Shown in pieces: positions 20,863-61,600 of a stretch of DNA of 64,000 nt. This stretch comes from Lytechinus pictus (taxonomy: Eukaryota): the NCBI RefSeq assembly GCF_037042905.1, contig NW_026974140.1, forward strand, positions 16,120,001-16,184,000. Direction: 5' to 3'. The position numbers and the translations under genes are program-made. The notes under the pieces were generated by a model that was given only the letters and a program-made list of their open reading frames with translations, ran no database searches and had not been told where the DNA came from. Positions within the stretch are counted from its first letter, which is position 1, and each line of letters starts with the position of its first letter.

Positions 20863-21001
20863 NNNNNNNNNNNNNNNNNNNNNNNNNNNNNNNNNNNNNN
20901 NNNNNNNNNNNNNNNNNNNNNNNNNNNNNNNNNNNNNNNNNNNNNNNNNNNNNNNNNNNNNNNNNNNNNNNNNNNNNNNNNNNNNNNNNNNNNNNNNNNN
21001 N
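20863..21001. other. Assembly gap
   Basis: Run of N. Confidence 1.
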
Positions 21002-25622: not shown

Positions 25623-25650
25623 ATGGAAGCTGAAACAGAACGAAGAGAAG
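25623..25650 (+). CDS. ADCY10: ADCY10-like exon 1 (MEAETERRE)
   Basis: ataATGg Kozak context and strong AAG|gtaaga donor. Phase 1 fits the exon at 40364 and gives an N-terminus of normal sAC length. Implies a 14.7 kb intron; the link is inferred. Confidence 0.6.
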
Positions 25651-37600: not shown

Positions 37601-40600
37601 GTATGTCCATGGTCTAGGGTAGCACACAACAACGGAGATACTTGCTGATGGTGTGCTTGCTCATGATGAGGTAGATATCACCTTGATCTCATATGTCTTG
37701 CAGCAAGCTGTGGTCAGAAGGTGCTTTGTGTGCTTATAGCGATGACACATACATTTTTGTCCTGCTTGACTATTGGGTTAATCAGGCGGAGCTATAGTGC
37801 AATGTACAAATCGAACGGTGAGATGGTACAGTACTGGATATCAATACAATCTGTGTTGACCTGGGACCAAAATGTTTGCAATTGCTTGGTGTTCATGCCC
37901 TCAGTGGATGCGACAAGAAATCATCCATACAGCAAAGGCAAGATAAGTGCACTCAACACACTATACTTGCCAGGGATTGTCAAGGTTTGGCTAAGATACT
38001 TGGAAAGGTAGGGACCACTCTCACAGATCTGATGGGAGCAGCAAAACCCTTCTGTCGTGCTATGTATGGCCATCAACCACCAGACGAGTCAGCTCGCTTC
38101 CCTCTCTTCATCAAGAAGAAAAAGAATCCTAAAGTAATGGCCCTACCTCCAACATCTAATAACATGTTGCTGCATGCGCTTCGAGCTCTTTTGATAGCTG
38201 TAGATCAGTACCAGCCCCTTGATGAGCCCGGGGATATAGCTCAATTTGGATGGGAGATCCGAGATGAAATCCCCATTGCTGTCATTGCTCTAGGTGTCCC
38301 TACTCCACCTGAACTGATTGATGTAATTCGCTGTCAATGTACATGATGTAGGTCAGAGGGTAAGAGATGCAGCACTGAGATATGTGGATGCCACAAAGAG
38401 CATTTGTCATGTACGACATTCTACAGTTCAGGTAAAGTGGAATTCTGCAATCCATCCACTATCGTTCACAATCATGACAATGTCAAAACTGGAAATGACG
38501 AAAGTGTCGTGATGGAGGATGTCGAGGAGGAGATTTTGAGCCTTGTTTAGATCGGGATAGTGAAGACCGTGAGGAAGCTTAGATGATATCCCTGAATACC
38601 TTAGGGGCGAGTTGAATTAAGAATGATCAAGTTAGCTTCCCGAACTTGTTCAAATTAGGAATATGTTTTGTTTTTTGCTCAAAGGCTGTACAAAATTAAT
38701 ATGTAATTTCGTGACAGATGTTCAACAAATTTTGAGCGACAAAAAGTCACGAGGAAGTGTTTACCGCTGTTTGAACCCTTCCAAAGAGGTCCTATCAGTC
38801 TCCGAAAAGTGATTTCAGTAATATTTTTTAGCTTAGGTCTGTCAGCCATCTTACTTTACGTTATAGGCCATTTACCCTGCAGCAGACCATCTTTTGAAAA
38901 AGAGAAAAACTTACAGAAACACCACCTAAACCCCTTATTATAAGTTGTTATATAGTACTCTGGGATTAGTGATTCAAAAGCTCAAGTTTCCAAAATGACA
39001 TCTCGTGGCCATCTTGAATTAAACCTGAAGATGATCCTATAATCAAAAAATTATAAAATTAATGGATTCTACACACACCAAAACCCCTAAAAAGAGGTAT
39101 TGATCATCATTCTGGAGCGAAGGGTTCAAAAGTTAATTTCTCAAAATGGCGTCGACCTGGCGGCCATCTTGGATTTAACCTGAAGATGACTTTATATTGC
39201 AAAATAGATAACATAAATGGATTCTACACACCCCAAAACGCCTAAAAAGAGGTATTACTCATCATTCTGGTGCAAGGGGTTCAACTCTAATTTTTCAAGA
39301 TGGCGTCTGGCGGCCATCTTGGAGTTAGCCTGAAGATCACCTTATGTAGCAAAATTGATATTAAAAATGGATTCTACGCACACCAAAACCCATAAAAAGC
39401 GGTATTCCTCATCATTCTGCTGCAAGGGATTCAAAAATTCAGTTTTTAAGTTGGTATCTGGCGGCCATTTTGGATTTATGCAAATTAGCAAAATTGCCCA
39501 AAGTTGCCGTTTGGGCAACCAAGCTGAATTTGTTCTAGGACCCCATAGGAACACGAATCAAGAAAAAAAACTTCATCGGAAAGAACATTTCTAGGTTCGA
39601 AAAATGTCTAATCGACAATTTTTAACTAGCGCGTGGAGGAATCATGTATGCTTTGATGTACTGAAACTTTGTAATAATCTGATTTGGTCGTGTTATGTAT
39701 GTTTTTGTATTTCGTTAAATCTCATGAAAAAGGAACAGAACACAAATCTTATTCTAAATCTAAATGAATAGATGTGTCCACATGGTCGAATACTCTCTTT
39801 TCCCTCCAACACGCCTCTCATTCCATATTCGCCCCATTTTCATTTTCACTTGCGTATGAAGAAGAAGCGTGTTTTTTTAGGGGGGGGGGTAGTGGTATCT
39901 CAATGAAATTTAGAAAAAGGAGGGGTTTTTAAAATCTTTTTCTTCAGTCTACGCATCTTTTGTACCGATTTTCCTTGCATATTCGGCTGATTGGGTTTAC
40001 CTTTCTATGTTTTTTATCATGTCATTTCAATAAAGGAGGGAAGTATCCCATTTTCCTCTACAAGATATTTTTATGTTCCTGCACTATATTATGCTTGTTT
40101 GCAAGTCTTCAGGAAATTTGTTCTTTATCTAGAACAACAACTTCCTTAAGCTGCTTGGCTGATATTGCTGCAATTGTTCATTTATTTATATATTTCCCAT
40201 CCTCTTTTGTCTTACTCTTTCCTCACTACATCCCCCATCACACACTCTCTCTCTCTCTCCATCTACCTTTGTTCTCCCTATCTTTCTTCATTCTCCATCA
40301 CCATGTCTTCCATTCTCTGATGTCTATTTATTTCTTCTCATCTCTCTTTTCATTCCGAAGCAGATGACATCTTAGAGCTAGCTGCGCATCTCCCTGACCT
40401 TGTCCTCCAAGCTAGTAACAGCATCCAAGATTACCCTGCCGTTCAGCATGTTGAGAGTGTTGTCATGTTCCTGGATATCTGGGGTAAGTTTTTAACTCTT
40501 TCTGATTCCATGAAGTTGGCTCCTGCAAATGTTTCTCTTATATATCAAATATAACGTCAAACATATAACTTATCCTAGCCTTGACCCATCACATGATTAA

Positions 40601-43600
40601 GCCAAACCATGTCACCATTCTACCCTTCAGATGGGGGCAGTGATTTTTGTTTGACGAGTCTATGATATTTACTTATTTTGGTTGATGTTTTTACGTTGGT
40701 GTTGATGATGTTTTTACTATTCTTAGTTTTCTTTCAACTTCACCTTCTCCGTCTTATTCCCCTTTTCCTTCTTCTTGTTCTTCATTCCTCCTNNNNNNNN
40801 NNNNNNNNNNNNNNNNNNNNNNNNNNNNNNNNNNNNNNNNNNNNNNNNNNNNNNNNNNNNNNNNNNNNNNNNNNNNNNNNNNNNNNNNNNNNNNNNNNNN
40901 NNNNNNNNNNNNNNNNNNNNNNNNNNNNNNNNNNNNNNNNNNNNNNNNNNNNNNNNNNNNNNNNNNNNNNNNNNNNNNNNNNNNNNNNNNNNNNNNNNNN
41001 NNNNNNNNNNNNNNNNNNNNNNNNNNNNTGTAACATACCCTTGGTTATTTGTGTCATTACAATGATTTGACTATAATTATGTTAAGCCAGTTCATTGGTT
41101 AGTTATAGTTTTGTATGTATTTTTATTGGTATTAATTTTTATTCTCAAAATAATGGGACAATGCAAGAAGCCCTTGTCGGACATTATCTACCATCTTAGT
41201 GAAATGCAAGCCAATGAACACATACATGACATATAGCTCCAGAATGATCGAACTTTGTTCCAAATATACCCCTCCCGATGCCCCTGGGCTAAAATAGAAC
41301 GAACAACAATAACATCCCAGCAACAGTTGCTTTACAGTTGACATGTTGTGTATTGAAATCATCTCAGAATAGAAACGTATAACGACAGAGGTTAAAAAGC
41401 TATAAGAGTTAAAAGAAAATATACTTCTATTCCTGGATATTTTGTGGTGCCTCTGTCGCCAAGCTGTTGCTTACGATAAAATGCATTTGGCGGAAATGTA
41501 GAAAGACGAGACGATAAGATAGAAGAGGTCCTCTGAAGGGGAAAAGCACACCAGTCCATGGGTAGGCCCACTGGCGGATCCGGGGGGGGGGGGGGGTGGC
41601 AAAGCTGGTTCGTGCCCCCCCCCCCCATTTTGAGAGGTAAAATTAGAATTTGTAATGTAAAAATGCCGTTAAAACGGAAGTGTGCCCCCCTTTTAAAGTG
41701 AAGACCTTCTTTTTTATTTTGCTTGTAAAATTTTTTCGTGGACGAAATGTCCTTATATTTTTTGTTGAAAACCTTTTTTTTTGTTTTGCTTGTCATTTTG
41801 TTTTCCTCGGGAAAATGTGCCCCCTTTTTGGAAAATCCTGGATCCGCCCCTGGGTAGGCCTACCCCTCCTCGGTGTCAATGGAAATATGTTGTAACTTGA
41901 AGAAGGTCTACATCTAAATTACATCCTTTTGTAAACCATGAGAAGTTTCAATAGTTGCATTTTGGTATCGAAAATTAATTATGCGTTTAATTCAACTCAG
42001 AAATCAAACTTGTTTGGAATTAGATATATTCAGGCAGAGAATGTCAGATTAAACGAAATCGTTGATAACCGCTATTAATAATCCTTTTCTTTGCCGTGAA
42101 ACGATTTTACCTTTCTTTTCCCTCCATTTTGATCTTTATTTGAATGGCATATTTTAATCTTGATATTTGTCCTCGAAGTGATATTTAGGAAAGATGACAT
42201 TGGGATCTTCTATTTGGCAGAATGTATTAGCTTGCCAAATTAAAGATATAGGTCTTAAGGGGGAAAAAAATCAAGGATATATACAGGACAATTAGAAAGG
42301 GGTGCAATACAAACTAAAGGTGACGTCACTTTCGTTCTCAAAATGAATAACGGAGTACTAACCAGGCCTCTCTTTTTGTATACTTCTTTCTTCTTCGCTC
42401 CCTTTTCTTCCTATTTAATTTCTTTTCTCCTCTGATTCCTTATTCACGCATTAGTGAGGTAAAACAATTGAAAGAAAAGATACCAAAAAGTCATTTTCTG
42501 AGGGGGAAGGGGTATCTGAATTTCAAACAAAAAATATCACATGTCCAAAAAGTACAATATCTGATCTTTACTTTGATACCTCAATCACAGAAAATGGTAA
42601 AGAAATAAGAAAGTTCTGTTTCTTTGAAATAAGGCTTGTATTTTACATAATTTCATTTAAAAAATATGTTATCCCAGATTCCCTATTGTACCTGTAGCAC
42701 AGTTAACAAAAGACTTTGTGCATGGCTGATCGTCAACAAAACGGATAGCTAATTAAGTGCGACAGCTAGCCTGTAAAACGTTTACATTTTATAAAATTGT
42801 TAAAATTCAAGCATTATTTTAAATGAACAGAACTCTGTTATTTCTGGACTTTTTTCTGTGATTGAGGTAGCAATTTAAAGAACAGATATTGTACTTTAAG
42901 ATATGTGATTTTCTTTTTGAAAGACAAATTACTTCTTGTTATCCTTTCTACAGAGTGTTTTACTCACGCTCGCGTGAATAGAGATTCTTGTGAGTGATAC
43001 CAGGTAAAATACTAAATTTTAAGTTTTACAATAATATGTGATTTGTCTGTTGTATTTGTGATAACTCGTGTTTAAATCGTCGACAATTTTCGTTTTCTTT
43101 TTTTTTCTGGGACGCACTGTATAGTCAAGCGTTGGTGCGAGCGTTGGTGATCCGAGCATTGGTCCATATCTGTCATCATGTGCATTAAGTTCACCGAGTT
43201 AATTATCTGACAGACTAAAATAAGGAGAAGTGACCATGAAGGCGTTTAATCAACATTTAACAACTTACAAGTTGTCAGATCTAACTATTTTCCTTCTTTT
43301 TATTGGTTGAGAAGCGCAGGTGTCTTGCTGTTACTATGGTAACTGTGGGTAATGACTAGTCAGTGCTGATGAATTTCATAAACAGTTTCCTGGAATTGTA
43401 GACCAACACTTTCTTTCTATACTTTTTAAATGATGACGATGATGATGGTGTTGCTGTTGTTATTGATGATGATGATGATGATGGTGGTGATAATGATGAT
43501 GGTGGTGATGGTGATGCTGTTGATGATGCTGATGATGATGACGACGACGACAACGACGACGACAATGATGATATGTATTCAGAAACAGAACTGAAACATG

Positions 43601-46600
43601 ATTATGATTATCTCTATCCATTAATCTCTTGCTAATTCTTGCTTTTACTTATTTCCTTGATAATCATCCAGGTTTTACCTCACTTTGTGAGAGACATACA
43701 AAGCTCAATCTTGGAGTTGATATCCTGACCAAAACCCTCAATGACTATCTAGGTCTCATCGAGAATGCTATCCTCAAGAACGGTGGCGATGTCGTCGAGT
43801 TTGCAGGTAAGAAAACGTTCGTAACCTTGTCCTAATAATGTTCCTTCTTAAATAAAACATGGGGGTGGGTCGTGTGGCTATATGAGTGCTAGTGATTGCA
43901 TAAAGACTGTAGGTTACTAATTTTTATACGATAAAGTTGTTCATGTCAACTTTACCGAAGTGCAGCGGATAAAAAAACAAGGACCATATTCAACATTTTT
44001 AAATATGATATTTAATCAATTAATTAATTAATTAGATTATGAACAGCTCAGTGATTGTACTCCAAGGGGGGGGGGGCATGCAGGGGCATCCCTCAGTGTG
44101 AAATCCCTTGTACTATGAGCACATGTATCATTTGAATATAGTATTGAGAGATGTATGATTTGAACTTTAACATCAGTGATGTTTATTGGTATTAAACTAA
44201 TGATGCCCATCACTCGAATGCTGCACGCGAAATAATACTAAGTGTAATATTAGAGAATTGTATCAATTAAAAATGAAAACAGTTCCGAGCACGTCCTGTT
44301 GACATTTTAAAGCGAGTGTTTGTTCTCGAAAAGAAAAATCACGATTGGTTGTTTATCTGACTGTTCTACAAGGATGTTATGGAAAGCATTATAATAGATC
44401 ACATAACAGTCGTGTTTCAAAACGAACACATCTAAACCATCAAAATAAAGAGTGCAAATGTTTACATTATAATAGGCCTACATCATCATTCTTAAGGTCT
44501 ATCAATGTAATTCTTTGTAGGCGTGTCTGCAATAAATTGGTCATTTGTGAAATATTTTTCGAATTATTTTATTGATTAGTTCTAATCACTTTGTGTTTAA
44601 GGCGTGCCTAGAAGATAAGTTATAAATGCTGTTATCTCTTTAGTTATTATTGTAGCTCCTGTAGACTGTATAAATTTAGTTTAATGTATTTCATTGTAAA
44701 GCGCTCAGAGAATCAAGTAATTATTATTATGCGCTTAGTAAAACTAACATTTTTATTATTACTAATTATTAACAAAATATTTTAATATTCAATTATTTCC
44801 TAAAATTCACAATGTCATTATTAATTATTTTGTGTGTAATTCATAATTTTGCCACATTGGCTTGCTCATATTTTGCTATAATTACTAGCAATGTATTGTT
44901 ATTGCTTTATTTTGTACTTATTATTTTTTTAAATTAATTTTAGAAGGCACAAATATCAATCAAGAAACGATGAAAGTAAAAGTATGTGTAAACTGTAATC
45001 ATTATTGTAAGCTATGTGAGTTAGTGATAAAAAAGACAATTATTTTGGTAAAACTGAAAAGGTCGAAGTCTATTTAGATTTGGATCATTAATATTGTTGG
45101 CGAACAACCAGAACAGGCTTATATATTAGACAACGTGGAACAAACGCATATTATGTTGATATTTTAAATATTGAGGCAAGAATGGCAAAGGATTTTATTG
45201 TAACAAGACACAACGTCAAATAAAATGAATAAAGGGGAATTCCCATTGCATTTTGTGTCTCGTTATATCGGAAAAAGGATTATCGGCTTTCATGTCATTA
45301 CGTCTATTTGTACATTTTCTGTTTGAAAACATGTCCTTGTACTTTTTTTTTTCTAAAGGAAGATCTTATCTTCTTCTTATCAGTTATTAGTATAGCAAGT
45401 CCCTTATTATCATTCTGTGCAAATTGTACAAATCTATTCATTTTGTTTTGATGATGATTGGCATAATGCCTTGCCTGCCTACCTGTTTATATCTCGACAT
45501 AGTAATGACCAATTAAGGACTCATTATTGGTTGGAAAAGTTCATGGGGTATGGTAGATATGTGATGATCCTAATAATATTTCTTGATATAAGAGCGTCTT
45601 TTGTATGTATTCAGATTATGTTGTCAAACTAATGTAAATGTCAAATAAAAGTCATTTAACTGATCAAATTAGCGTGATGCATGACAGTTCCTACATCAGA
45701 AGAGGGAGAGAAGTAGAGAATGGGGAAGAAAGAGAGGGAGAGACACACACACACACATAGAGAGAGAGAGAGGGAGAGAGAGTGGTGGTAAGATAAGGGG
45801 ACAAGATAGAAGAGAAGACATTGATAAAAAAAAACAAGAATATGACTATTGACATGCAAATAATTTTATGACTATTTTGAAATTATTACATTTCCATTAG
45901 ACTTCATTATGCTTGCATACATGCATTGCAAGACATGAGTCTTTGAGGAAAGGTCATTTTTACAGTGGATATTACTATACTGGCAGGTGTTTTACCAAAA
46001 GAAGATGCACGTTTGAAAGAACCAATTTCGTATTTCATGGCCCTAAAAGAATTGTACGGCTATATTGTAGCATAACGAGGTGATGTGTAGAATTATAATT
46101 ATCATCGTTCACCTTCTTTTATCCTCACTCCCTTTCTTTCTTTCTTTCACTCTCTCTCTCTCTCTCTCTCTCGCTTTCCTCCCTGTCACCCCCCTCTCTA
46201 CCCCACTCTCTCTATCTCCCTCCTCAACATTTACCTTTCATTCTTACAGGTGATGCCTTACTGGTAGTATGGGATGTTGATTTATATGGCCAGAGAGCGG
46301 CCATGGCTCGTGCTATACGATGTGCAAGACAGATACAGAGGAAATGCCATGATTGGACAACAGACTCGGGCATCTCATTGGCCCTCAAGATAGGTAAGGG
46401 TAGCGTTTCATGAATAGTCTGTGATTTTTGATTGGCCAAGAGAAAATACGTCTGTGAAAATCACTCACAAAACTCTTCATGAAAATAATGATCCAATTAT
46501 TAGTCTTAAATCGATGCTAAATCAAAACCTTTGTATGACCTTTCATTTTATGATGTGTGCTTTCATTATTTTTCTATCTAAATGTCAATGGTAATGGAAA

Positions 46601-49600
46601 TCGAATAAAAAATTCAGGTTATAAAGTTTAATCTGAATCCTCAATAGTTCAGGCACGCCGTTGACCTCCTTATAAATCCGATTATGATATCAATTAAGGA
46701 AATTTACGATTTTGTTATCTGAAATTGATATACATTTGAAATAGAATATCAAAGGCGTAGATCATTGTGGGTGTTTCCCCCAGATGAAAATGAAAGCAAA
46801 AATTTTCAATTAACAAATTTATAAATTTACATACCAAAATCTCAAACTCGATGCTAAATTCTTTTTATACCTCTATGTTATATATCTGTCAAACATTTGG
46901 ATCCACCAAGTATACGATCTATCGAGAATAACTAATCCTAATGTTTACTTTTTTGGTACACTTTGGAAATTAAAAACGTTACATAAATTATACTTCGGAT
47001 AAAAAGCAGATCTCCAACATATTCTTTGTGGTAACACCTAGCTGTGTAATTATACAAAATTAACTTAGGAATGGCGTTACCTCTGCGTTAATCGCTTTAC
47101 CATGCATGGCGGCGCCCATTTCATTTGAGGATCGGAATAATGTTTTGAAGGGGGGGGGGACTTTTCCTTCACCAATCTCAATACTCGCACATCATTAATC
47201 ATTATCTCTTTTTCTGTAATGTGTTTCCTGCTTGTTTATCTATACACTTCCCATCTTATTTTTCTTTCCTCTTCCGCACAGCTCTGGCAGTAGGTCAAAG
47301 TTTCATCACTTACGTTGGATGTCGCTCGTGTCGTCATTACAGCACTAGTGGGCCAGCCGTGAATGAAGCTAATAGAACAGAGAAGAGATGTAGTAGAGGA
47401 AGTATAGTCCTAAGTCAGCAAGCATGGGAGGCCTGTCCCGACAGAACAGCTATGAGTGTGGAAGAATTACCCGAAGGAGAAATAAAAGTATGATGATTTC
47501 ATGTCCACAGAGGGTCTTTTTCAAAATTGTTATGAATATTAAGTTGTACGAATACTTACTCACCCCCATCAAACCGAAGAAAATCGTATAGCATTCTTTT
47601 AAAATGTTTAAAACATTTTAAGTAGACTATACTTTTCTCCCTTTGTTTTTATTGTTATGAATGATAATCCCACCGCGGTCTATAGCGTCCTCTGGCAAGG
47701 CGTTAATCCACACTTTGTCACTCTCGACCCAGGTGCTAAATGGGTACCCGGTAGGATGCGAAAGATAATGTATGTTTGAATTTTTTCCAGCGCCATAATG
47801 AGGAATGCTCCCCAGGGAGTGGAAATTGTGCACTTTTCGTGCTGGATTGAAATGAATCCAATGACCGGGTAATAATATGCTGTAACGCGCTTTGAGCCAA
47901 TCTGGGAAAAGCGCTTTATAAAAAAAATTGGATATTATTATAACGCTTTTAATAAACATGAAAAAAAATAGTTTTATTTTCAAACGATGTTGGGACTACA
48001 ATGAAACCTATCTTTTTAATAAAAAAAAACACGATAATGTAATGTATAGCCTGTTAACGTATACGCATAATGGGAAATGATTATCACGATCTGTAAAACA
48101 CTTTATATTTATTTTTTGATTAAAATAATTTGCAATTTTGAGATGGGTTTGTCTAAATAACTAATTTATTAGTGAATATCTATTTGTGCAACCTAAAATA
48201 TACCTCGAGTTTGACGAACATGAATCAAAATTTTTCCAAATTATTGTTTAAAATTGACTATTTTTTAGAATGCATATTCACCAACACATTGATGATTTTG
48301 ATCATGCTTTCTTATTATAGGGGCATTTCAAATTTATAATTGTTTTGATTTCATTTCCCAGCTTTTGTCTGTCGAGAAAGAATGGGCTGAAACAGAACTT
48401 GATCCAGGTATATATGTATTATTATTTTTTATATTGTATATAAAGATTTATTCTCGATTTTGATTTGCTATTCCTACCATAAAATTTGCTATTTTTGGCA
48501 ATTTATACAAAGAAATGATCTTTCGTAATTTCCTTGCGATTCGAAAATTATTAAAGGAAGGTGGAGGGGGGAGGTTAAAAACCGTCTTTGGAAATTCAAT
48601 TCCCAAATTCACTTAAAATATACTATCCTTCAATAAGTTCAATGTCAATTAAAGAATTTTCGAAAATGTCTCCGTATTCAATTTGATCTCTTCGTTCCCT
48701 CACTTCATTATGTTTTTATACAATTCATTAATTTTGCCCCCCCAGAAATTTCCTGCGTACAGTCGTTTGTAGCATTATATTTATCTGCATGATTATTATG
48801 CCAACTTTGCATCAAAATCAAATTTATATATCACCTATTTATGAAAACGTAGCATCGTACTTTTTCTCAGAAACATCGAGGTAAAATTTTTAACTTAATA
48901 AGTGACGTCAACACGATCCATTTGCAAAACAATAAATAGTTATAGGAATGAACTTTTGTACTTTTAGACTATATAGGTTCGGTTTTCTTTTCTCTATTTT
49001 AGTCCGAAAAGATTTTCAGACGCTCCATGATGCCTTGAAACAGGGACAGGTAATGAACTTATTCCTCTTTTAAACACTTTCTATATCCCTTCTCCGAAAA
49101 CATCAGCTTCTGCTCAATTTATTTCCAATATACCCTAATCGATTGAAACGCGTTTTATTGATACAAATTTCTCCGCCCCTAATGAAGCGAGATGTCTTCT
49201 TTGAATTGCCGATATATTGGATCCCTCTGGTAAATGTATCGACCAAAATCTCATTGAAATAATGTACTTTTTATGAAATAACTGTATGTTCACGATTTAT
49301 ACAGAAAAACACACAAAATTATGGCATGTTTATCAAATTAGGATGTTACATTTTTAATGTTAAAACAGAAGAACGATCGATTTTAGAAATCGTGATTCAG
49401 CTTATGATATTTTGCTTATTATGTTATGTCAAATCTTTCTCTTGGCTTACAATACCGATATGTCAGTTTAGCCTACAATCTTGGTTTAGGGAGTGGTTTT
49501 ACGAAGAGCTGTGAAATTAATAACGGGGCCAAGAATTGATAAAGAAAATATACCTCAGTTTATATTAGATCCATAAGATTTACATCATTCTCATTTCTTT

Positions 49601-52600
49601 ATTCATCTTTTTGGACATAATTCACATATTTTTCAACTCGGATCATTATACACCACGTACCTACAAAAGATACCCTTTTTCGGAATTCTACGAATCAATG
49701 ACGTATATGATAGGAAACGGCATGAATTTAACGGTATTGTTGTTATGCAATTTCCAACGGACAGTTCTCATATTCAGCAAGCTTTATTTAAATAATTCTT
49801 CATAGATGCTTTACATTCTAGAAGACGTTATCGTGTATGATGTTATTTTGATCGTAATATTTTTCTATAGAAACTAGAGCGTGAGCCTCGGATTCGGAAG
49901 ATTAATTTCAAATCTGTTCATCGATCCAAGATGCGTCCCTTCATTGCACCTCCAGTTCTTAGCAAGGTATATTAATATCCTAAAATGATAATCATTGGAA
50001 GGAGATTCGGGGTGAGATGAAAGAAAGAAACACAAAAAGAGGAAGGGTGTGTGTGTTAAAGAAGTAAATAGGAAGGAGAACAAGAGAGAGAGAGAGAGAG
50101 CTTAATTAAATAAATTCATTTTTTGTACACTTATACAAGTCTTGACTATGAATTTTATCCATCATAATATGAAAAAAATATTGTATGGAATGAAGACGCC
50201 CGCTTTGCTTCAGACTTAATTGAAAAAAATTGAGTTAATGCTATATTGCTATCTTCAGTAGATATTAAGTTATTATGAGCGATCTTTTTAATTGTATTCA
50301 ATCATAAAATCGCCTGGGCCTTATCAAAATTTCTTTTAAAAAGTTTAAAGCAAATGAAGACTCCTTATTTATTCTTAATAATATTGCAAGGACAGATTAT
50401 TTTTTTTGACAATATTTCGCAAGATGTGAGATCACTTTTGACCCGACGAGACTGTTATCAATTTTCTGGTATTTTAGTTATGGAACATCATGCTTTTCAC
50501 TTTCAGTTTGATGAGAACCAGTCTCTTGACTACCTATGTGAGATGCGTGAAGTGACAGTCGTGTTCATCAATCTTCACATGGACTCTGCGCATGACCATT
50601 CTACGTGTCTACAATCAGTATATGATAAGATACATACATCAGTATCACAGTTTCAAGGTACATACGAGTCTATTCATGCCATGTATCATTGTATGTCTGT
50701 CTCTCTTCCGCATCTCCTTTTTATGTCTTTCAACTACGTTCCTTATAAATATGCACAACGTTCAAGTAAACGCACAGTTCTCTCATTTGCCTATACATCT
50801 CTCTCTGACCTTTCCATCTTTTGATTGTTCCCTCCTATTCTCTTATTCTCGTTCTTCTTCTTAGCATTGTTATCATAATAATCATCATAACCATCATCAT
50901 CATCATTCTCATCATCATCATCATCATCATCCTCATTATTATTGTTATTGCCGTAATTATTTTTATTGTTCTCATAATTGTGATAATCATTATTATCTTT
51001 TTTATTCTTATGGTGATGATGATGAGTATTATAAATCCATTATTATTTTTTAGAATTATCTTGGATTTTGTTATTATCATTCCTCATCATTCATAATCAT
51101 CATGGTCATCATTATATTCTCTCTTTTTTATTTCAGTGCTTTCATCTTAGTTGCTTTCATATAAACTAGAGATGTTCTTTTTATGAATACAATGAATAGA
51201 AATTGTTTCCGTTTGTTTATCTTTCCAGGAATGATCAACAAGATCTTTGAGTTTGACAAGGTTAGTAAAAAACATTCAAAATTTCAGAAGTCACATTTTT
51301 ATTAATAATTCGGAACGCAAAATGACAGAAATAAGCCAATTAGATTATAAAACACAAAAAATAATGTCGTCTCAGAAGGATCAGTTCTCTTGCTCATAAA
51401 TGCTGAAAGTTATCATTTACTATCATGAAGGTAAAGCATAAATTCCAAACGTGTAAATTGTGTTTGAATCTACTACTTTCTTTATTACAGTATATTCAGT
51501 CCACAAGTCTTCTTATCCATGTTATCACTCTCATATCGATGCTTGCCTCTAAGTCCCTTGATAATGTTCATATCAGGCACCTTCTCGCCTTGTAAACACT
51601 CTCTCCATGACTCTTGGCAAATAAAGTCACTCTACATCACAGTCTGGCCTTGCCTTGGCTATCACTTTCACCAACCTCTATACACAACCAACATAAAGAC
51701 ATTCTATTCTTAAATGACGACCAAAATTAGAAATTCGATTTATTGAAATGTGATTTATCGGTGCAAACGTGCTTGCTTTCATCGCGAGCACGGCTACACG
51801 CGACCAATCGTTTGCTCCGAACTCGACCTAAATTATAAGAAGCGCCATTTCAGGTCTGAGTGTATTCGGAGGGTAGATTGAGTGAAAGCGAGATAGAAAA
51901 ATTGGCAAGATGTGGTAAGCTATGACGTCAATTGACAATACCCAATCTCAAGATCCCGAGATCCATATTGCTTGAATATGTCTCCGTCTTTTTATTAAAA
52001 GCGGGGATTTAACAAAAATTCCCCAACCGTCATCTGGATGAAATAGATAAACACTAAAAAGCGCGCGGAAATAAAGTACAGCCAATCTTAATATAGATTC
52101 TCGTCTGCGCCGTGTCTTTTTTATTAAGCTCTCACAATAAGGATTTATTTTTGTCAGGTTGATGGATGTAGTGGAGGCACTTTTCTGTATTTCTTTCAGG
52201 GTACGAGTTTCTTGGTATTATTTGGTCTACCAGGGTTTAAACACGAACATGAAGCTTGCCATGCTGTTCAATGTGCAGGTCAAATCAAAGATGTTGTCAG
52301 TTCAATGATTGAAGTCAAGTAAGTTGACCGTCGTATCATCAGTCTTTCTTCCCCCTCCTCCTATATCATATTATTTCTATCCCTACTGCTCTCTGTAACA
52401 TACATAGCATATACATTGTGGGATGCTGTTTAAATCATAATTTTTCAAAACTCACAAGAAAAGGTTTCCCTGAATCTTTGGTTCTCGTAATTAATGAAAC
52501 AATGAGTCAACTCGTGTTATAAACGGTACGTAGAACACAAAAATACAAGGACGGATAAAACTCCCTCAACAGTAGCCCCCCGTAAAAATAAAATTATCCT

Positions 52601-55600
52601 GAATCCACCATTTATCTTTATGAAAGTGTTGTTTGCAATATCATTACCATTTCGAACATAATTTCAAACTCCACGTTAGATGGGTTGAAGTGATGAAAAC
52701 GAAAAATAAATATAGAAACATGAAAAGACAAAATTTATCAAAGATGTTTTTGTATGTGCTAAAAATAAAATTTATCATTCTTTTTGCTGTTTTAATTTGC
52801 CTCTTTTCTAACAGGCAAATCTCTATAGGTGTAACTACTGGTAAAGTGTTCTGTGGAGTCGTGGGCCACAATGAAAGACACGAATATACAGGTGAGTGGG
52901 ACAGAGGTTCAATACTTTAGGAAGCAACCTAGAGTTAGATTAAGTAAAGTCATCATGGACACGGGATGGTCGCGTACTGATACTGGACAGACAAAATAGG
53001 AAACATCTAATAAAAAACAAACATTGACCTTGATACTCTTAAAGTGTGAAAGAATATATCTCCTGGTTGCAACTTCGGCTATGAATGAAATTTATTTTGA
53101 ACTGAATCTGAACTTGAAATAATGTTCTACTTGTATTCATTTTTTTTTAATGTAGTTTTGTTGTTAAAGTTTCTCTTTATTAATGTATTGTAGTATATGT
53201 CCTCCTTTAGTGAAGACCCAGTCGAATATCTGTAAACAATATCATGTTGAATACTGTGTAACTTGCAATGCCTCAACAGATGTATGTATATGCTTCCTTG
53301 AAAAATTTGTTTCTTATTATGATAAAAACTTTTTAGTAAAATATAATTCGCATAAAAAACATGGAATTCTTAAGAAGCCTTGGATGACAACAAAAGTCTT
53401 AAAAATAGTTAATAAAAAGAACAGAATGTATAAATTATATTGTAAACATCCTTCAAATAAAAATAAAATGAACTATAATAGATGTCGAAATAGTGTAAAA
53501 AATACATAAAAGAAGTCAAAAGATCTTATTGTTTCAATGATTTCAATAAACATAAAGGTAACATGAGAAAAACTTGGAATGTTATTCAAAATATTCTTGG
53601 TAAATTTAAAAACAAAACACCTGCTAGTTTCAGTGTAAATGGGCATGATATATGTGATAATAAAGATATTTCTAATTCTTTTAATAACTTTTTCATAAAT
53701 ATCGGCCCATCTATGTCTAATAATACTGCTCCAGCTGAAGGTAGTGAACTTTATCAGTCGTTTTTACCAACTCCATGTGTAAATACATTGTACTTTAAGC
53801 CTGTTACCGAAAATGAATTGATTAATATTGTGAGTAAAATTAAGAAGAGTAAAAGCACTGGTGTTGATAATATAAGCTCTATTGTTGTAAAGAAAGTCAT
53901 ATTTTACATTGTAAAACCCTTACTTTATATTTTCAATCTTTCTCTTTCAACTGGGGTAGTTCCTACAAAACTTAAAATAGCAAAAGTAATTCCAGTGTAT
54001 AAGAAAGGAGACAATCGAAATATATTGAATTACAGACCTATTTCTATTCTACCAATATTCTCAAAGATATTAGAAAAGATTGTATTTACACGTGTTAATG
54101 ATTTTCTTGATAAAAATGCAATTTTAAGTTCATGTCAATATGGATTTATGAAAAATAGATCAACTGAAATGGCATTAATTGATTTGCATAATTATTTGAT
54201 TTCCTGTATTGCAGAAAAAAATCACACAATAGGAGTATTTTTAGATTTAAGCAAGGCTTTCGACACAATTGATTATAGTATAATGCTTTATAAACTGAAA
54301 AATTATGGATTTCGTGGTCTTATTCTAAACTGGTTTGAGAATTATTTAACAAACAGAAGTCAAATGGTATTTTTTAATGATGTTAATTCAAGATCAATGA
54401 AAATTCTATGTGGAGTACCACAAGGTTCAATTCTAGGTCCGCTTCTTTTTCTACTTTATATAAATGATCTCTCCAACTGTTCATCTCTTCTCAAATTTGT
54501 ACTTTTTGCCGATGATACAAATATTTTGATTAGTCACCATAATATTATAAATTTACAGCTTAAATGTATCTAAATGGTTTAATTCAAATAAACTATCTAT
54601 AAATGTAGAAAAATCTGTATACATGTATTTCAACAACTCTAAAAATAACAGTCATGTGGATAATCTGCTAGTTCAGATCAATGGACTTGATATAAACCAT
54701 GTTACTTCTACCAAGTTTTTAGGCGTGATCATTGATCAAAATTTGACTTGGGATAGCCAAATTCTTGCCGTAACTAAAAGGACTTCAAAAAATATTGGTA
54801 TCATCGGCAAACTACGTTTTCTCTTACCTAGGAATATTCTTATTTTGCTGTATAATACACTTGTCTTGCCTTATTTAAGTTATGGAAACATTGTCTGGGG
54901 AAATACATATCCATCAAAGTTAGACAAACTTCTAAAACTACAAAAGAGAGTAGTTAGATACTGTACTTTATCTGATTTTCATGCCCACTCTAAACCTTTG
55001 TTTCTCAAATTGAATGTACTTGATATATATAAGCTTAATAAATTTCTAATAGGATTAATCCTCTTCAGATATGTAAACACATCTTTACCTGAAAATATTC
55101 AATTATTATTATCATTCAATAATGAGATCCATAATTACAATACTCGTCATAAAGAGAAATTTCATATATTCAGATGTACTAAAACATTTGTTTCATTTAC
55201 TTTTAAACATACTGCACCCCTATTTGGAACGCACTTCCTCAAGAGATACGTCAAACTAGTAATTTCAATGGTTATAAAAGAAGATTAAAGTCATATCTGT
55301 TAAAGTTAACACATACCTAATCCCTATTTATATACTTTTTCATACGATGATAATTCAACTTTTCACTCCCTCTTCACTTCACTTTATGTTTATTTTGTAA
55401 AATTCCTTATTTTTGTATTGTTTTTTATAATTATTTACCTTAAACTATCCATTGCAACAATGTTTAATTCCAGTTTGGGACACAGCCTTGACAAGTTCAA
55501 GTCCCTTTTTGAACTTTTGCAGTGACCCATTTCCATTTGATTTTTTTCTGTATATGTGAAATCAATACCATTTCTGTGTTTGTATAAATTGTATTGTATC

Positions 55601-58600
55601 CAAATGTAAATCTTGTAAATTTGTATGTAAATCTTGTAAATTTGTAAATTTGTATGTATGAATTGTATCTTTTTATCGAATGGAATGAATAAATCTTGAA
55701 TCTTGAAATTGATTTCAAGCTTTAGGGTGAGGATTGTTAGAGGGATGATGGAACGAATATATGGGATTACTATTTTCTATATATTAAATTTTGCAAACAG
55801 GGCCCATAGGACCTAGCGAATGCATAGTATATAATGATTTAGTATTATATTTTTCTGTTTGAAATGAATACAAAGGCATTTGGATTTCAATTGTAATAGG
55901 CGTGATGATAATGTTGTACTGCATGTGAATCTATTTCACATAAATATTAATTGGCTATGAAATAGCTTTCATTTATTTAGAATCATATTCTTGTTGGAAA
56001 TGATGCAAAGATATTTGAATTTGAATTGTAATCGGGGTCAAGAAAATGTTTTATTGCACGTAAATGTTAATATTTGACATAAATATATTAATTGCTTATG
56101 AATTGGATTGAAGTTATAATGTCTTTAATTATTCAGGAAGTGGGAGATCGAGAATGTAATTGAAAAAGACAATTTGCTATCCATATATTTATATCGCAAT
56201 CATAAAGCATTTTTATTTGATTCATTCCCATTTATTAATGCAAATATTTTAAACTGTGAAACGGACAACTTATCCTATTACTCCCAAACGTCATCTCTTG
56301 CCTATCTATCATGTCGCACTTCATCTTATCTTCCTTAACGCCATTCTTAATCCATCTTCATTAGTGATCGGACCTAAAGTCAACATGGCCGCTCGTCTGA
56401 TGATGCATTATATCGGGAAGGTCACGTGTGATGAAGTTACCAAGAAACGATCAAGGAATGACTCTAGAGGGTTCATCAGGGTTGCTAACAAGGAACTCAA
56501 AGGCATCAATGATCCAGGAATGGTTTGGGAGTACACAGGAGCAGGGTGAGGGATGAATGCATTTTATGATAAAAAAGATATAGAATAGGAGAAGACTATA
56601 ACTATAAGATAAAAGTATGTTGTATAAGATGGTTATAATAATGATCAAGTCTGCAAATGCTCAATAGATAGTAGCTAGTGATACAAATTATGTGCTATAC
56701 AAAATAAATTAGTATAATGAAAGTTCTTTCCGAAAATTAAATTGTCGCTGCAAAGGAATCAGATAATAGTGGGCAAAGTTAAAGGATACATATATTAATT
56801 CATAAGAGAAAGGATTTATGTTAATGTTGACGTAAATGATGAAGAATTCGGATACCATATTTCAAAAATGAATATAAATATATCTTTTTATATTATAAAG
56901 CAGCTATTTCTATTTATATGAGATTCTACTTGTTATCATTATTATTTCTTTCAGGAATGTTGACAACTCTATTCCAGAGTATGGACATCCTTTACTATGT
57001 AAGTTCAACCATTTCCTTAAGCAATTCAAAATTTTCAGACTCGTTCACAGCAATTTTTCAACTTTGTAAAAGAAGAGGGATTTTTTTTATAAGTTCAGTC
57101 ACGTTTCAAAGTTGTATTGCTATACAGGGGCGGTGATACTGGCAGAAAGGCGAGGAGAGAGTGTCCCAACAGTAGATTTTTAAACATAAATTGAAGAAAA
57201 ATTGGAAGAACATTTAAAATGTGGAAAGGAAGGATTTGAGAAGAGATGGCTTGTTTATGTAACTACGCAATACATGGTTGTTTTTGTTTAAAAAAAACAA
57301 ATCAAGCACTACCAATGTGTTATCTTGCAACCCTCTTTTTAAAATATTCTCGCGCCACCCCCGTGGTTATAATATCTGTACAATTTTAAATCACATTTTT
57401 TGTTTCGAACAATGTTATCAATGTGATAAAATTGAATAATGTATGCTACTGAAATTGGTATATTTGTTGTATAAGAACATGTTGTTTTTCTTCATCAGCA
57501 TATGTGGAGGAATTTGAGCAGTGCTGGAAGTCACTATGGAGAATGGCTTCCCTAGCAACGAATTCATCGAGTACTATCCATCAACCAGCTAGGTTTATAG
57601 TCATTGGGGGAGACCCTGGGGTCGGGAAGACAAGACTACTACGATCTGTCATGGATACAGCGAAGGGAATGAATATGGCGTAAGTATAATGATGAATGAA
57701 TACATATAAATCTGTTAATTTCTCTCTTGATGATTTTGGTGAATTACCTCAGATTTTATATGCCTTAGAGGAAATAGATCAAACTCGTCTTAAAAAACAA
57801 GATTAAAAAGATATCATAAAAAAGGGAAAACTATGAGGTAGATTTTATCAAGCAAAATCATTTTGCCCACGTTTTGCACTACCCCATCACCGTGTGATGC
57901 GGTCTCTCTCAGCACCACCCGCATGCAATACAAACTTATTTAATCCTTTACTCGAAACATATAGGCCGCTAGCAAATTATCATACATGAGTATAATAATT
58001 TTGATATAATAATTTTATATAAACTATAAATCAGTGAACTTGTGAAACAAAGCCATAATCAAAATACTTTGAAACAACCTTAAAAAAGTCTTAAGCTCGA
58101 TACAATTCTTGAAGATCTTTTCCTCCCAACTTTTTACAGAGTATACACATGTCGACCTAGCGTTGGTCAGTCAAGTACACCCTACCATACAATCTGCTCT
58201 GTAGTACTCCAACTCCTTGATCTCCAGGATATAGGGAGCCCTCAGGAGAGGGAGCATAGGCTCCAGGAGAGATTTGAAGACACAGAGCTTTTCTGGCATC
58301 TTTGTCTTCTTAATGACCTACTTGGAATCCAGGTATTATGACACAAAGTTTATATCGATATTCCAGAATTTAATTTTAAGTAATATAGTAAAGGTCTGTG
58401 AGTCATGTTTCTAATACTATAATACTTTCTCACCATTAAAGAAAATACACCACAAGGTATATACTTCAGTAAACTCCCAGATGTTTTCATGCCACATTTT
58501 GAAAACTGATCCTGAAACTCCATGTCTCTTTACATGTCTATGCCAGTTGTTTGAAGACATCACTATTCTTGTGTTTATCTATATAATTACTTTACAAAAT

Positions 58601-61600
58601 GATTCTCATTAAACTTCCTCAGATCCCAGTAACAGATGAGATCGCTGATCTATCTCAACGAGAGCGGACTCAGGCTCGTCATGCCGTCCTTGCCTACATC
58701 GTATCAGAGGCAAGGAATAGAGATAGCGCAGGAACCCTCATTGCCATCGACGACGCACACTACATTGACCAAGATTCATGGACTTACTTAGAGGCACTGC
58801 CATCCAAATACTGCCTGGTTGCTTTAGGTAGGCCTTCCTTTAGGAGCTAGAAAACTATGTTATCCTCTCACAACATTAACTTTAAAATTTTTACGGTGTA
58901 TGTCGTTTGATTACTCTTTGAATCAGGTATTTTCTCCAATAAATCTGGGACTCGGGTCTGGGACAATCAATATTGTCAGCTTCAGATTTTCAATCGCCAA
59001 CAGACCCCCCAAAATCGTTTTCTTTTATTATTGAATATTTCACATTCTTCACCCTTCCAGGTGATGCTCTTTTTTACAATTTTAATTTAATCAAATTTAT
59101 CAAAGTTGATTGTCTCGGCACCTTACTTTGGCTCAATTGGCCATGACTCTATATAATTTGAATGATTGTGAATGCCAGGGTTAAAAACAGTTATATTCAA
59201 AACGAAAGAAAAGGACTTATCATTACAAATGATAAAAACGTCATATTTGCTAGCTTTCCTTCAAGGTTCTTGATTTCTTTGATAAAGAACATGTGAGGAT
59301 AGGTGAACAGAGCTCCTTATATTCATGGTTTTGAAAGAAGCATTGCCGACAATGTCTAATCACGTTTCTTTTCTTTGTTCTCCTTCTTTTTCTTCAGCTA
59401 TGGGAAGTTTCAGACGTGATGCAGAGGTACCTATCGCAGCCTCCAGGATCCTTCAAGCCAGGAGCACCCTCCATATCAAGCTCCAGGGCTTGGAGCCACA
59501 GTGCATGGAGCCTTTACTGTGTCAGCTCCTGGAGATGAATAGTGTTCCAAGAGAACTTACCATGTAAGTAGACTATTATATCAAGGGCTTCACTTTAGTG
59601 TACAGTATATGATTCTTGGACCTCGATGAAGAAACAGAGCCATTATATTGATAGCTCTTAATAGAATGTTTCATTGACAGGTATTCCTTTCAAGTCATGA
59701 TATTCATGTTTTTGTTTAAATTTTTATTATGGTAAATTAAATCACATAGAAGGAAAAGAAATATAACCTCTCTGTTAGGCCATTATTTGGCTATTCTCAA
59801 ACTATGATATTCGGAAATAAATTATACATTTACTTTGCAAGTGGCCACAATATTTGTAGGAAAACCTGTCCAGTTGTGAAACATTACTTTCCAAATCAAC
59901 ATGAAGACGTATTGGATCTGTTTTCTTCAGATGTTCTTATTGGATACTTTTGCATATAACTTTGATGTATTATTGTAATTATTGGGTTGACTAGTTTAAG
60001 CATTTGATGATAATTTAAACATCATTTTATAGTATTCATCCTAGGATATTATTATATGATTCCTTTAAAAAATATTCACAATTACATGATAAATAATTTT
60101 CAACGAATTCATCTTTAAAAAAAATAAATTTCAGCATGCTAACCTCCCACCAGCCCAATCGTATCAACCCATCTTGGGTAAACCAATGTGTATTCAACAT
60201 GCTTCATCATCAACAATTAGAGCTATACACTGAAGGAGAGAGAACAGTCTGTCGGGTAGCTAAGGGGGTCAGGCTTATGGAACTGGATATCCCACCTTCT
60301 CTTAGAGGTAGGTCTTTTCATTTATCATTCTTTGCATGAACAGGTACCGTAGCTTGTAAATTAATTTTAAGAAAAATGGGAGTGATTCATCAACATTTTC
60401 ATCCATGTTGTCAGATCTGACTTTTCTTGATTTTGATTTGCCAAGAATCCCTGTTACTAAGGTAACTGTCACATAAATTGGACTTGTCAGATAAAACATC
60501 TGACAAGTCGTTTTATAAAACGCTCCCCAGATCGCTTAAAAGTTTATTTTCATTGATTTAAATTCTTGAATAGAATACTTCCTATCATATTTTTAATGCA
60601 GAAAGAAATATATTATAATGTTTTCAAATGAAAAATAACACATTTTTGTTCGTTTATAGGCTGTATGATAGCATTCATTGACCGTCTACCCGAGCTACAA
60701 CGAACCACAGTCAAGATCATATCCGTGGTCGGAACATCCTTCACGGCGAACATCATAGCCCACCTCATGCCCAACGTCATCCAAGAGAAGATAAACCCTA
60801 CCATCGGATCACTCCAATCTGCTGGCATCCTGGTCTTCGGCAGCGGCGGAGCGTTGCCGACGGTGACGAAATCAACGACGATGACAGCAGGGTCACTTAG
60901 GTTCCAGTCTGTGACACTCCAGGAGACAGCTTATGCACTCCTGCTGGAGAAACAAAGAAGAAAGCTCCATGAAAGATATGCTACCTACCTGGAGAATAAT
61001 CATCTATCTGGTAGGAAGGGGGAGATCAGTTCTCCTGGTGGTCTCTCTCCTGCTGGTATCAAGAAACTACTTGGTAGGTCATGTTTCTTACAATATGATA
61101 GCATAAAGGCATTGTTCCTCAAAATATCAATTGTCCTGAAAACTGTGCTCTATCAAAATAAGTGTAAAGGCTATAAAGGAGAGTATAATAATATGATGCG
61201 GACAGATAAGTATTCCTGGGGATCGTATCGTCAAAATTTTTAATCTGACAACTTTTCAGATCTGACTACTTTCTTTGAATTTGTTTGGCTGAGTGCTATT
61301 CCTGTGGTAACTGTCAGATTCAGCAAGACTTGGTTGGATAAAATATCCAGCAAAGTCCTTTCATGAAATCCTCTCCTGTAATCCACACATACAAATTTGA
61401 GAAAGAAAAAAAAACCGAGAGTGGAAACGTCATGGACGAAACATCACATTACATTTTTGGCAAGCTGAGCAATTTAAAACCCGGTGACATTACAATATCT
61501 AGATATTTTAGAGAGAGTGGTTTTAACAGAGGATTTAATTGACATCTGATTTTTCCATATTGTATGAAAACATGATATATAAATTATATAAATGTTATCT

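Follow-up and report, generated by a model that had tools for sequence, protein, structure and literature searches.

A second soluble adenylyl cyclase of echinoderms, apparently tail-anchored and with a charge-reversed bicarbonate pocket

The window analysed here, a 64,000-nucleotide stretch of the sea urchin Lytechinus pictus (contig NW_026974140.1, positions 16,120,001 to 16,184,000), carries a gene for a short paralogue of soluble adenylyl cyclase (sAC; ADCY10 in human), hereafter the short sAC. A first-pass annotation of the sequence had described an sAC-like cyclase in which the bicarbonate pocket is charge-reversed, citing GAG codons at 43797-43799 and 51249-51251 and the exon 5 motif HYSTSGPAVNEANR, and all three read in the window exactly as described. 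Our comparative analysis indicates that the two glutamates belong to a conserved acidic pocket in a second sAC of echinoderms. The features of the gene, with residues numbered as in human sAC, are the following:

25623-64000, plus strand: gene of the short sAC paralogue (ADCY10-like), with 25 coding exons in the window, placed by mapping of its own proteins (P0174/P0176)
25623-25650, plus strand: coding exon 1, the ATG exon (MEAETERRE), with a phase-1 donor GTAAG, placed by L. variegatus homology
40364-40483, plus strand: exon 2, opening C1 and ending ...VVMFLDIW, with the metal-binding Asp (D47 in human sAC) as GAT at 40474-40476
43672-43806, plus strand: exon 3, C1 helix and strand beta2 (GFTSLCERHTK...GGDVVEFAG), from mapping and the RNA joint 43806>46250
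43797-43799, plus strand: GAG, coding for Glu where human sAC has Lys95, on which bicarbonate docks, from sequence, alignment and RNA
46250-46393, plus strand: exon 4, with D99 (GAT, 46252-46254) and K144 (46387-46389) and RNA joints on both sides
47282-47487, plus strand: exon 5, containing HYSTSGPAVNEANR, from mapping, alignment and the RNA joints 46393>47282 and 47487>48362
47341-47376, plus strand: exon 5 residues Ser166 (47341-47343), Thr167 (47344-47346), Asn176 (47371-47373) and Arg177 (47374-47376)
50507-50659, plus strand: exon 9, start of C2 (...EVTVVFINL...), from mapping and alignment
51230-51260, plus strand: exon 10, (G)MINKIFEFDK; K334 is AAG at 51240-51242
51249-51251, plus strand: GAG in exon 10, Glu at the position of human Met337, from sequence and alignment
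52200-52890, plus strand: exons 11 and 12, C2, with T405 at 52888-52890, from mapping and alignment
56364-56546, plus strand: exon 13, VIGPKVNMAAR, with N412 (56382-56384) and R416 (56394-56396), from mapping and alignment
57501-59561, plus strand: exons for the STAND/AAA_16 P-loop NTPase, with Walker A motif GDPGVGKT, from Pfam PF13191 and mapping
63779-64000, plus strand: start of the last exon, whose continuation past the window encodes the tail anchor YYIYAVCSVIVAFWAYLIL and the stop codon

Exact mapping of the annotated protein onto the genome yields 24 coding exons from 40364 to 64000, among them one that begins at 60662 and ends at 61075. Exon 1 was placed by homology, within a 990-nucleotide block that is 92% identical to the L. 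variegatus locus L010 and whose coding part is identical. All 25 exons are open and the model contains no stops, in agreement with the 25 exons and about 1101 open codons counted originally; the stop codon lies 213 nucleotides downstream of the window end, in the continuation of the last exon. Both runs of N in the window (20863-21001 and 40793-41028) are intronic. Both public L. pictus protein models of the gene have wrong N-termini: one begins at the internal methionine of MFLDIW, and the other is fused to an unrelated open reading frame (38136-38337) for which no Pfam match was found. The conserved ATG exon at 25623-25650 is used by neither.

The short sAC has the cyclase and NTPase domains of its family. 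Pfam recognises two stretches of Guanylate_cyc (PF00211) and, between residues 460 and 617 of P0174, an AAA_16/STAND domain (PF13191; E 3.2e-13). An AlphaFold2 model of the cyclase core (mean predicted local distance difference test score 87, predicted template modelling (TM) score 0.87) was compared with the PDB, and the top 24 matches were all human sAC, with TM scores of 0.81-0.84, ahead of any other protein. No Pfam match to a TPR region was obtained for the short protein of about 1170 residues, whereas the long urchin paralogue of 1858 residues described below gave a weak TPR_12 match. The C-terminal end is distinctive: a hydrophobic segment, YYIYAVCSVIVAFWAYLIL, encoded past the window end (64001-64213; L011:301-513), lies 11 residues from the stop codon, and the maximum of a 19-residue Kyte-Doolittle profile (1.97) falls on residues 1099-1117 of 1128. 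We counted as a sequence-defined tail anchor a single hydrophobic segment of ~19-22 residues, at most about 30 residues from the C-terminus, in a protein with no other transmembrane segment, and the short sAC has such a segment. All full-length proteins of its clade (8 further ones), hemichordates included, have a similar tail, which is absent from the long sACs compared. Thus, this "soluble" cyclase looks anchored to a membrane by its tail.

In human sAC, bicarbonate is bound by the amino group of Lys95 and by both terminal nitrogens of Arg176, and is also held by main-chain groups, the NH and CO of Val167 and the NH of Met337 (PMC4506562). The first-pass annotation had named Val167 and Met337 as lining the pocket; their contacts run through the backbone and not the side chains (PMC4506562). 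A loop from Met337 to Gly341 shuts the second site to nucleotides (PMC4506562), and Arg176 forms an inhibitory salt bridge with Asp99 that bicarbonate releases (PMC12250328). To place the L. pictus residues on this scheme, we used HMMER alignments to human sAC chains in 4clf numbering, the chain index of which equals the native human numbering. PDB searches with single exons gave weak E-values (0.8 and 0.003), and the alignment was then fixed through the full core of an orthologue, the 98% identical L. variegatus protein, whose C1-C2 region matches human residues 9-465 with a phmmer E-value of 1.6e-81.

The alignment bears out the five proposed substitutions K95E, L166S, V167T, R176N and M337E. 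In exon 5, which translates as ...HYSTSGPAVNEANRTEK, an arginine follows directly after Asn176, at position 177. Both cationic bicarbonate ligands are lost (Glu95, Asn176), so that the mammalian-type Lys95/Arg176 pair is absent. Lysine can change to glutamate by one nucleotide, whereas methionine (ATG) requires two changes. The second glutamate sits on the beta2'-beta3' loop of C2, and the loop spanning M337-G341 is retained as EFDKG. By contrast with the pocket, the equivalents of D47, D99, K144, K334, T405, N412 and R416 are all kept, as originally proposed and as the core alignment and the comparison across the clade confirm; every residue needed for ATP-to-cyclic AMP (cAMP) catalysis at the single C1-C2 active site is thus present. 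In C2, the pseudo-site has Asn where the metal-binding Asp is expected (...VVFINL...) and is for this reason catalytically dead, like that of all sACs. Position 409 holds Pro, versus Arg or Gln in other sACs.

Orthologues were first found by a one-exon search of representative proteins, which returned echinoderm entries named "adenylate cyclase type 10-like"; with the Diadema orthologue as query, a word-based search next listed about 120 sACs, and the 90% cluster containing the L. variegatus protein yielded the models P0174 and P0176. Six-frame searches of the L. pictus genome with exons 3 and 5 detected one further sAC gene, on contig C7, which reads GDVLKFAG (K95) and HFVLSGPAVLEANIAEK (V166, L167, N176). 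It is the long canonical urchin sAC (P0070), with K95/N176/M337. The two urchin copies are about 41% identical in the C1-C2 core.

In a maximum-likelihood tree of 44 catalytic cores, ten echinoderm short proteins (two from Lytechinus and one each from Diadema, Asterias, Acanthaster, Patiria, Amphiura, Holothuria, Antedon and Anneissia) form one clade with support of 100/100. Together with the contig C7 copy, this result confirms the suggestion that K95E/M337E defines a conserved paralogous clade beside a canonical K95 copy. The sister of this clade consists of two hemichordate proteins of 1110-1143 residues (support 100/95). Long sACs of ambulacrarians fall into a clade of their own (87/92). 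Deeper branches, including the one that would place the short clade among bilaterian sACs, have no clear order in this tree. A one-residue insertion (C-P-D/E) near human residues 197-198 is common to the short and long ambulacrarian clades and missing from other sACs; since both clades share it, the insertion suggests a duplication inside the ambulacrarian lineage, though the tree leaves the question open.

Glu95, Asn176 and Glu337 are present in all ten short-paralogue sequences, which cover echinoids, asteroids, an ophiuroid, a holothuroid and crinoids, and also in two Strongylocentrotus purpuratus fragments, bringing the orthologues to 11 echinoderm species. Among the roughly 110 other sACs compared, there is no Glu at position 95 or 337, nor an acidic residue of any kind: they have K, N or Q at 95 and M, L, A, S, G, F or T at 337. 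The hemichordate sister proteins read K95/R176/M337. Because they still have this state, both glutamates would by parsimony have arisen on the echinoderm stem, and neither has changed since the split of the five classes. The seven catalytic residues, too, are the same in all short-clade sequences of these classes. The remaining exon 5 positions are less constant. Ser166 is not clade-wide (V or I in crinoids), Thr167 is Ser in two starfish, and residues 173/177 vary (S/K in S. purpuratus, I/R in Diadema, R/E in Patiria, I or S/K in crinoids). Pocket-lining acidic residues occur elsewhere in sACs that keep K95, for example Glu167 in bivalves and a gastropod, and Asp166 in corals and hydrozoans.

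The first-pass annotation had regarded K95E as diagnostic on the grounds that R176 alone varies among non-mammalian sACs. This did not hold: position 95 is Asn in cartilaginous and ray-finned fish, coelacanth, frogs, crocodilians, turtles and the long copy of one hemichordate, and Gln in barnacles, and replacement of K95 outside mammals is also documented in a published survey (PMC12867704). It is the acidic residue, and not the loss of lysine, that is unique. We also scanned for changes fixed in at least nine of the ten short proteins and nearly absent elsewhere, at otherwise conserved positions, setting aside two columns (a Cys common with the hemichordate sisters and a mostly-gap column). 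Only V46L, V83E, K95E, M337E, C342T, T343S and R409P emerged, with Gln in the brittle star as the exception to V83E. As no compensating new basic residue is found among these clade-specific core changes, the charge shift is uncompensated, and we estimate the pocket region to be about five charges more negative.

The short sAC gene is intact, its transcripts are spliced, and purifying selection on it is strong. A codon comparison with L. variegatus locus L010 over 1054 codons gave synonymous and nonsynonymous divergences (dS and dN) of 0.11 and 0.006 and a dN/dS of 0.055, far from the value near 1 that had been named as a sign of decay; in the cyclase core the ratio is 0.072. Between the two Lytechinus species, whole-protein identity is 98.3% for the short and 98.6% for the long copy. 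Assembled RNA from two runs provided spliced contigs of 4771 and 4081 nucleotides, and two stranded RNA-seq runs of the same species placed reads on exons 3-7, the region examined, where GT..AG joints were found at 43806>46250, 46393>47282, 47487>48362 and 48407>49003. The first of these is present in the two contig runs and in the two raw-read runs. First mates mapped without exception to the minus strand, as expected for plus-strand RNA under the usual convention for stranded libraries.

The reads span the Glu95 exon; Glu337 is supported by the genome and by the agreement of 11 species. No variant at 43797-43799 was found in RNA contigs or raw reads, confirming the Glu95 codon in RNA. Since L. 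variegatus has the same codons and RNA agrees at 43797-43799, the GAG codons are not the product of chance or error. The exons covered contain only two transcript variants, both synonymous: 46374 C/A (ATC/ATA, Ile) and 47352 G/A (GGG/GGA, Gly inside HYSTSG).

Recent work sets the background against which this pocket has to be read. Kendall et al (PNAS 2026) reported that, across 13 phyla, non-mammalian sACs have neutral residues in place of K95, R176 or both, and that natural K/N (urchin) and N/R (salmon) enzymes are unstimulated by HCO3- and respond to pH (PMC12867704). In the Arbacia enzyme, alkaline activation with Mg2+ depends critically on K117, which corresponds to K95, whereas K214 is dispensable and H222 marginal (PMC12867704). 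The short sAC has Glu in place of this lysine and retains Asn176; residues at the K214/H222-type positions differ as well, from which we draw no conclusion. The residue key of the survey contains no Glu, and its supplementary table lists echinoderms as K/N only and Saccoglossus as K/R; the work covered the long urchin gene only and leaves a second sAC gene unmentioned (PMC12867704). The hemichordate short paralogues (Glandiceps P0067 and Ptychodera P0015) carry the "mammalian" K95/R176, while the long Glandiceps copy is N/N, and for this reason the published K/R call for Saccoglossus may concern a short, tail-anchored paralogue. We found no published description of a second echinoderm sAC within the literature collection searched. 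Bicarbonate insensitivity of a non-mammalian sAC, being already published (PNAS 2026), is expected rather than new. What appears new, judged from the sequence comparisons, is the conserved acidic pocket in an apparently tail-anchored second echinoderm sAC, together with the putative C-terminal hydrophobic anchor conserved across the short clade.

We favour, with moderate confidence, the reading that the gene encodes an echinoderm-wide second sAC that is active, does not bind HCO3- in the mammalian manner, and uses its acidic pocket as a switch responding to protons or divalent cations. The functional part of the original claim, an active cyclase that either does not respond to bicarbonate or senses a different ligand, is plausible by analogy and consistent with the published K/N and N/R sACs (PMC12867704). 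On this reading, the short sAC would be an active adenylyl cyclase making cAMP. With neither cationic ligand left, and with an acidic side chain expected to push the anion away, it would be unable to bind HCO3- as the mammalian enzyme does; nor would the lysine-based pH mechanism of the long urchin sAC be available to it, because the K117-equivalent lysine is gone. Glu95, on strand beta2 of C1, should lie near residue 337, since in the human structure a single small anion touches both positions; D339 is on the same C2 loop as residue 337, and the pocket is in communication with the D99 loop. Carboxylates that lie side by side in twos or threes usually bind metal ions or have a raised pKa, which is why we favour a proton or cation switch. 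As a best guess, held with modest confidence, E95 and E337, adjoining the conserved D339 and the D99 loop, would form such a switch at the C1/C2 interface, making the short sAC a differently regulated, membrane-tethered source of cAMP. A bolder version, which we put forward tentatively and consider less likely to be right than wrong, is that the enzyme represents a third sAC regulatory class in echinoderms, tail-anchored and with an E95/E337/D339 cluster that would sense protons or Ca2+/Mg2+/Mn2+ directly, beside the lysine-dependent, pH-regulated sperm sAC.

Several observations weigh against the favoured reading. Neutral substitutions of K95 in the human and K117 in the Arbacia enzyme cut activity, about 20-fold with Mn2+ (PMC12867704), and because of this effect Glu95 could mean a weak enzyme unless it is compensated. 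That the Glu337 carboxylate points into the pocket is something we only infer, because in crystal structures it is the backbone of M337 alone that touches bicarbonate. The co-occurrence of E95 and E337 carries no statistical weight for physical coupling, since both arose once, on one branch. Finally, in the tree of catalytic cores, L. pictus and L. variegatus are separated by longer branches in the short copy (0.028) than in the long copy (0.004).

The main rival, which we consider possible but improbable, is a constitutive enzyme with a built-in anion. Here, the Glu95 carboxylate would take the place of bicarbonate and accept the hydrogen bonds of the V167 and M337 backbone NH groups, in keeping with the fact that bicarbonate itself resembles a carboxylate and is bound through K95, R176 and amides of the backbone (PMC4506562). 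With Asn176 the autoinhibitory R176-D99 pair (PMC12250328) is impossible, so that no inhibitory bridge would need releasing and the pocket could be a fixed structural plug; this part of the proposal seems equally improbable to us, as does its corollary that the enzyme is regulated elsewhere, through its NTPase domain, the level of substrate or its tethering to a membrane, the tail anchor of the clade offering another mode of control. However, the long paralogue shares Asn176 and yet is regulated by pH (PMC12867704), and a built-in anion leaves unexplained the joint fixation of M337E, two nucleotide changes away from ATG, of V83E and of the loss of R409.

A catalytically weak or inactive scaffold, in which the charge reversal beside the D99 loop cripples turnover and the protein acts through its NTPase domain and anchor, is in our view doubtful. 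It would fit the lowered activity of human and Arbacia enzymes substituted at K95/K117 (PMC12867704), and a basic residue near the active site, at position 409, has been lost; yet the invariance of seven catalytic residues in five echinoderm classes and the core dN/dS of 0.072 are hard to explain without catalysis.

Among class III cyclases, Glu at the purine-specifying Lys position is a guanylyl-cyclase signature, which raises a further option: that Glu95/Ser166 and Asn173...Arg177 of C1 bind GTP or make cGMP at a guanylyl-cyclase-like second site. Although N173 and R177 are present in Lytechinus, only Glu95 of this set is conserved while 166, 173 and 177 vary, C2 lacks the metal-binding Asp pair (...VVFINL...), and the loop that occludes the human site for nucleotides (M337-G341; PMC4506562) is kept; we therefore rejected this option as very improbable. 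A decaying duplicate, an assembly error or a sequencing error can be dismissed as having a negligible chance, given 25 open exons, a dN/dS of 0.055, spliced transcripts with the same codons and the agreement of 11 species, and we found no support for any of them, the wrong N-termini of the public models being a matter of annotation.

Three introns of the gene contain repeated or mobile sequences. In intron 5, a repeat at 47650-47930 has an RNA depth of >1000x, against about 10x on exons, and loose read ends upstream of it resemble the 3' half of a tRNA (…GGTTCGAATCC-like). Because of this resemblance, the repeat is probably a tRNA-derived short interspersed nuclear element expressed from many copies; ARAGORN found no tRNA gene in the intron 5 copy. 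Intron 12 carries, at 53494-55285 and in the same orientation as the gene, a retroelement with two open frames of 359 and 245 residues and a reverse transcriptase domain (PF00078, E 1.9e-28), probably a non-LTR (long terminal repeat) retrotransposon. A GAT/GAC-rich simple repeat in intron 2 (43402-43600) reads as a long poly-Asp frame just 5' of exon 3 and lies outside the transcript.

The regulation of sAC outside mammals has just been reopened by the finding that the long urchin and salmon enzymes follow pH, with the pocket lysine at the centre (PNAS 2026). Every echinoderm class has, in addition, a second and equally constrained sAC with Glu for this Lys, a second Glu from the other domain and a predicted membrane anchor. 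The hemichordate K/R/M and echinoderm E/N/E states thus amount to a natural, evolutionarily polarised experiment on the role of the pocket, and L. pictus is a genetically tractable urchin. Moreover, cAMP measurements, inhibitor effects and knock-downs ascribed to "the" urchin sAC may involve two enzymes.

Compared with human ADCY10 (4CLF, 4CLL, 4OYZ), the short sAC shares the pseudo-heterodimer core of C1 and C2 in tandem (E 1.6e-81, TM about 0.83), the seven catalytic residues, a degenerate second site closed by the FDKG loop and a STAND NTPase after the core. It differs by K95E, R176N, M337E, L166S and V167T in the bicarbonate pocket and, at about 1170 residues versus about 1610-1850, by its length, the lack of a detected TPR region and its tail anchor. 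Control of its cAMP production is, to judge from the pocket, probably unlike the bicarbonate control of the mammalian enzyme. With the sea-urchin sperm sAC (Arbacia ApsAC, S. purpuratus susAC, P0070) it shares the family, the genome and N176, and by analogy both urchin enzymes are expected to be bicarbonate-insensitive; the long sAC, in contrast, keeps K95 (K117), M337, V83 and R409, has a long C-terminal region without a tail anchor and belongs to a separate clade. The hemichordate short sACs (P0067, P0015), its sister clade, are alike in size class (1110-1143 residues), domain order and C-terminal tail anchor but have kept the K95/R176/M337 pocket, V83, C342 and R409, and would thus represent the state that preceded the charge reversal on the echinoderm stem. 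Other non-mammalian sACs with one neutralised pocket residue have likewise lost at least one bicarbonate ligand (K95N in fish, K95Q in barnacles, R176N in many invertebrates); their substitutions are neutral, whereas the echinoderm short sAC has an acidic residue at both 95 and 337.

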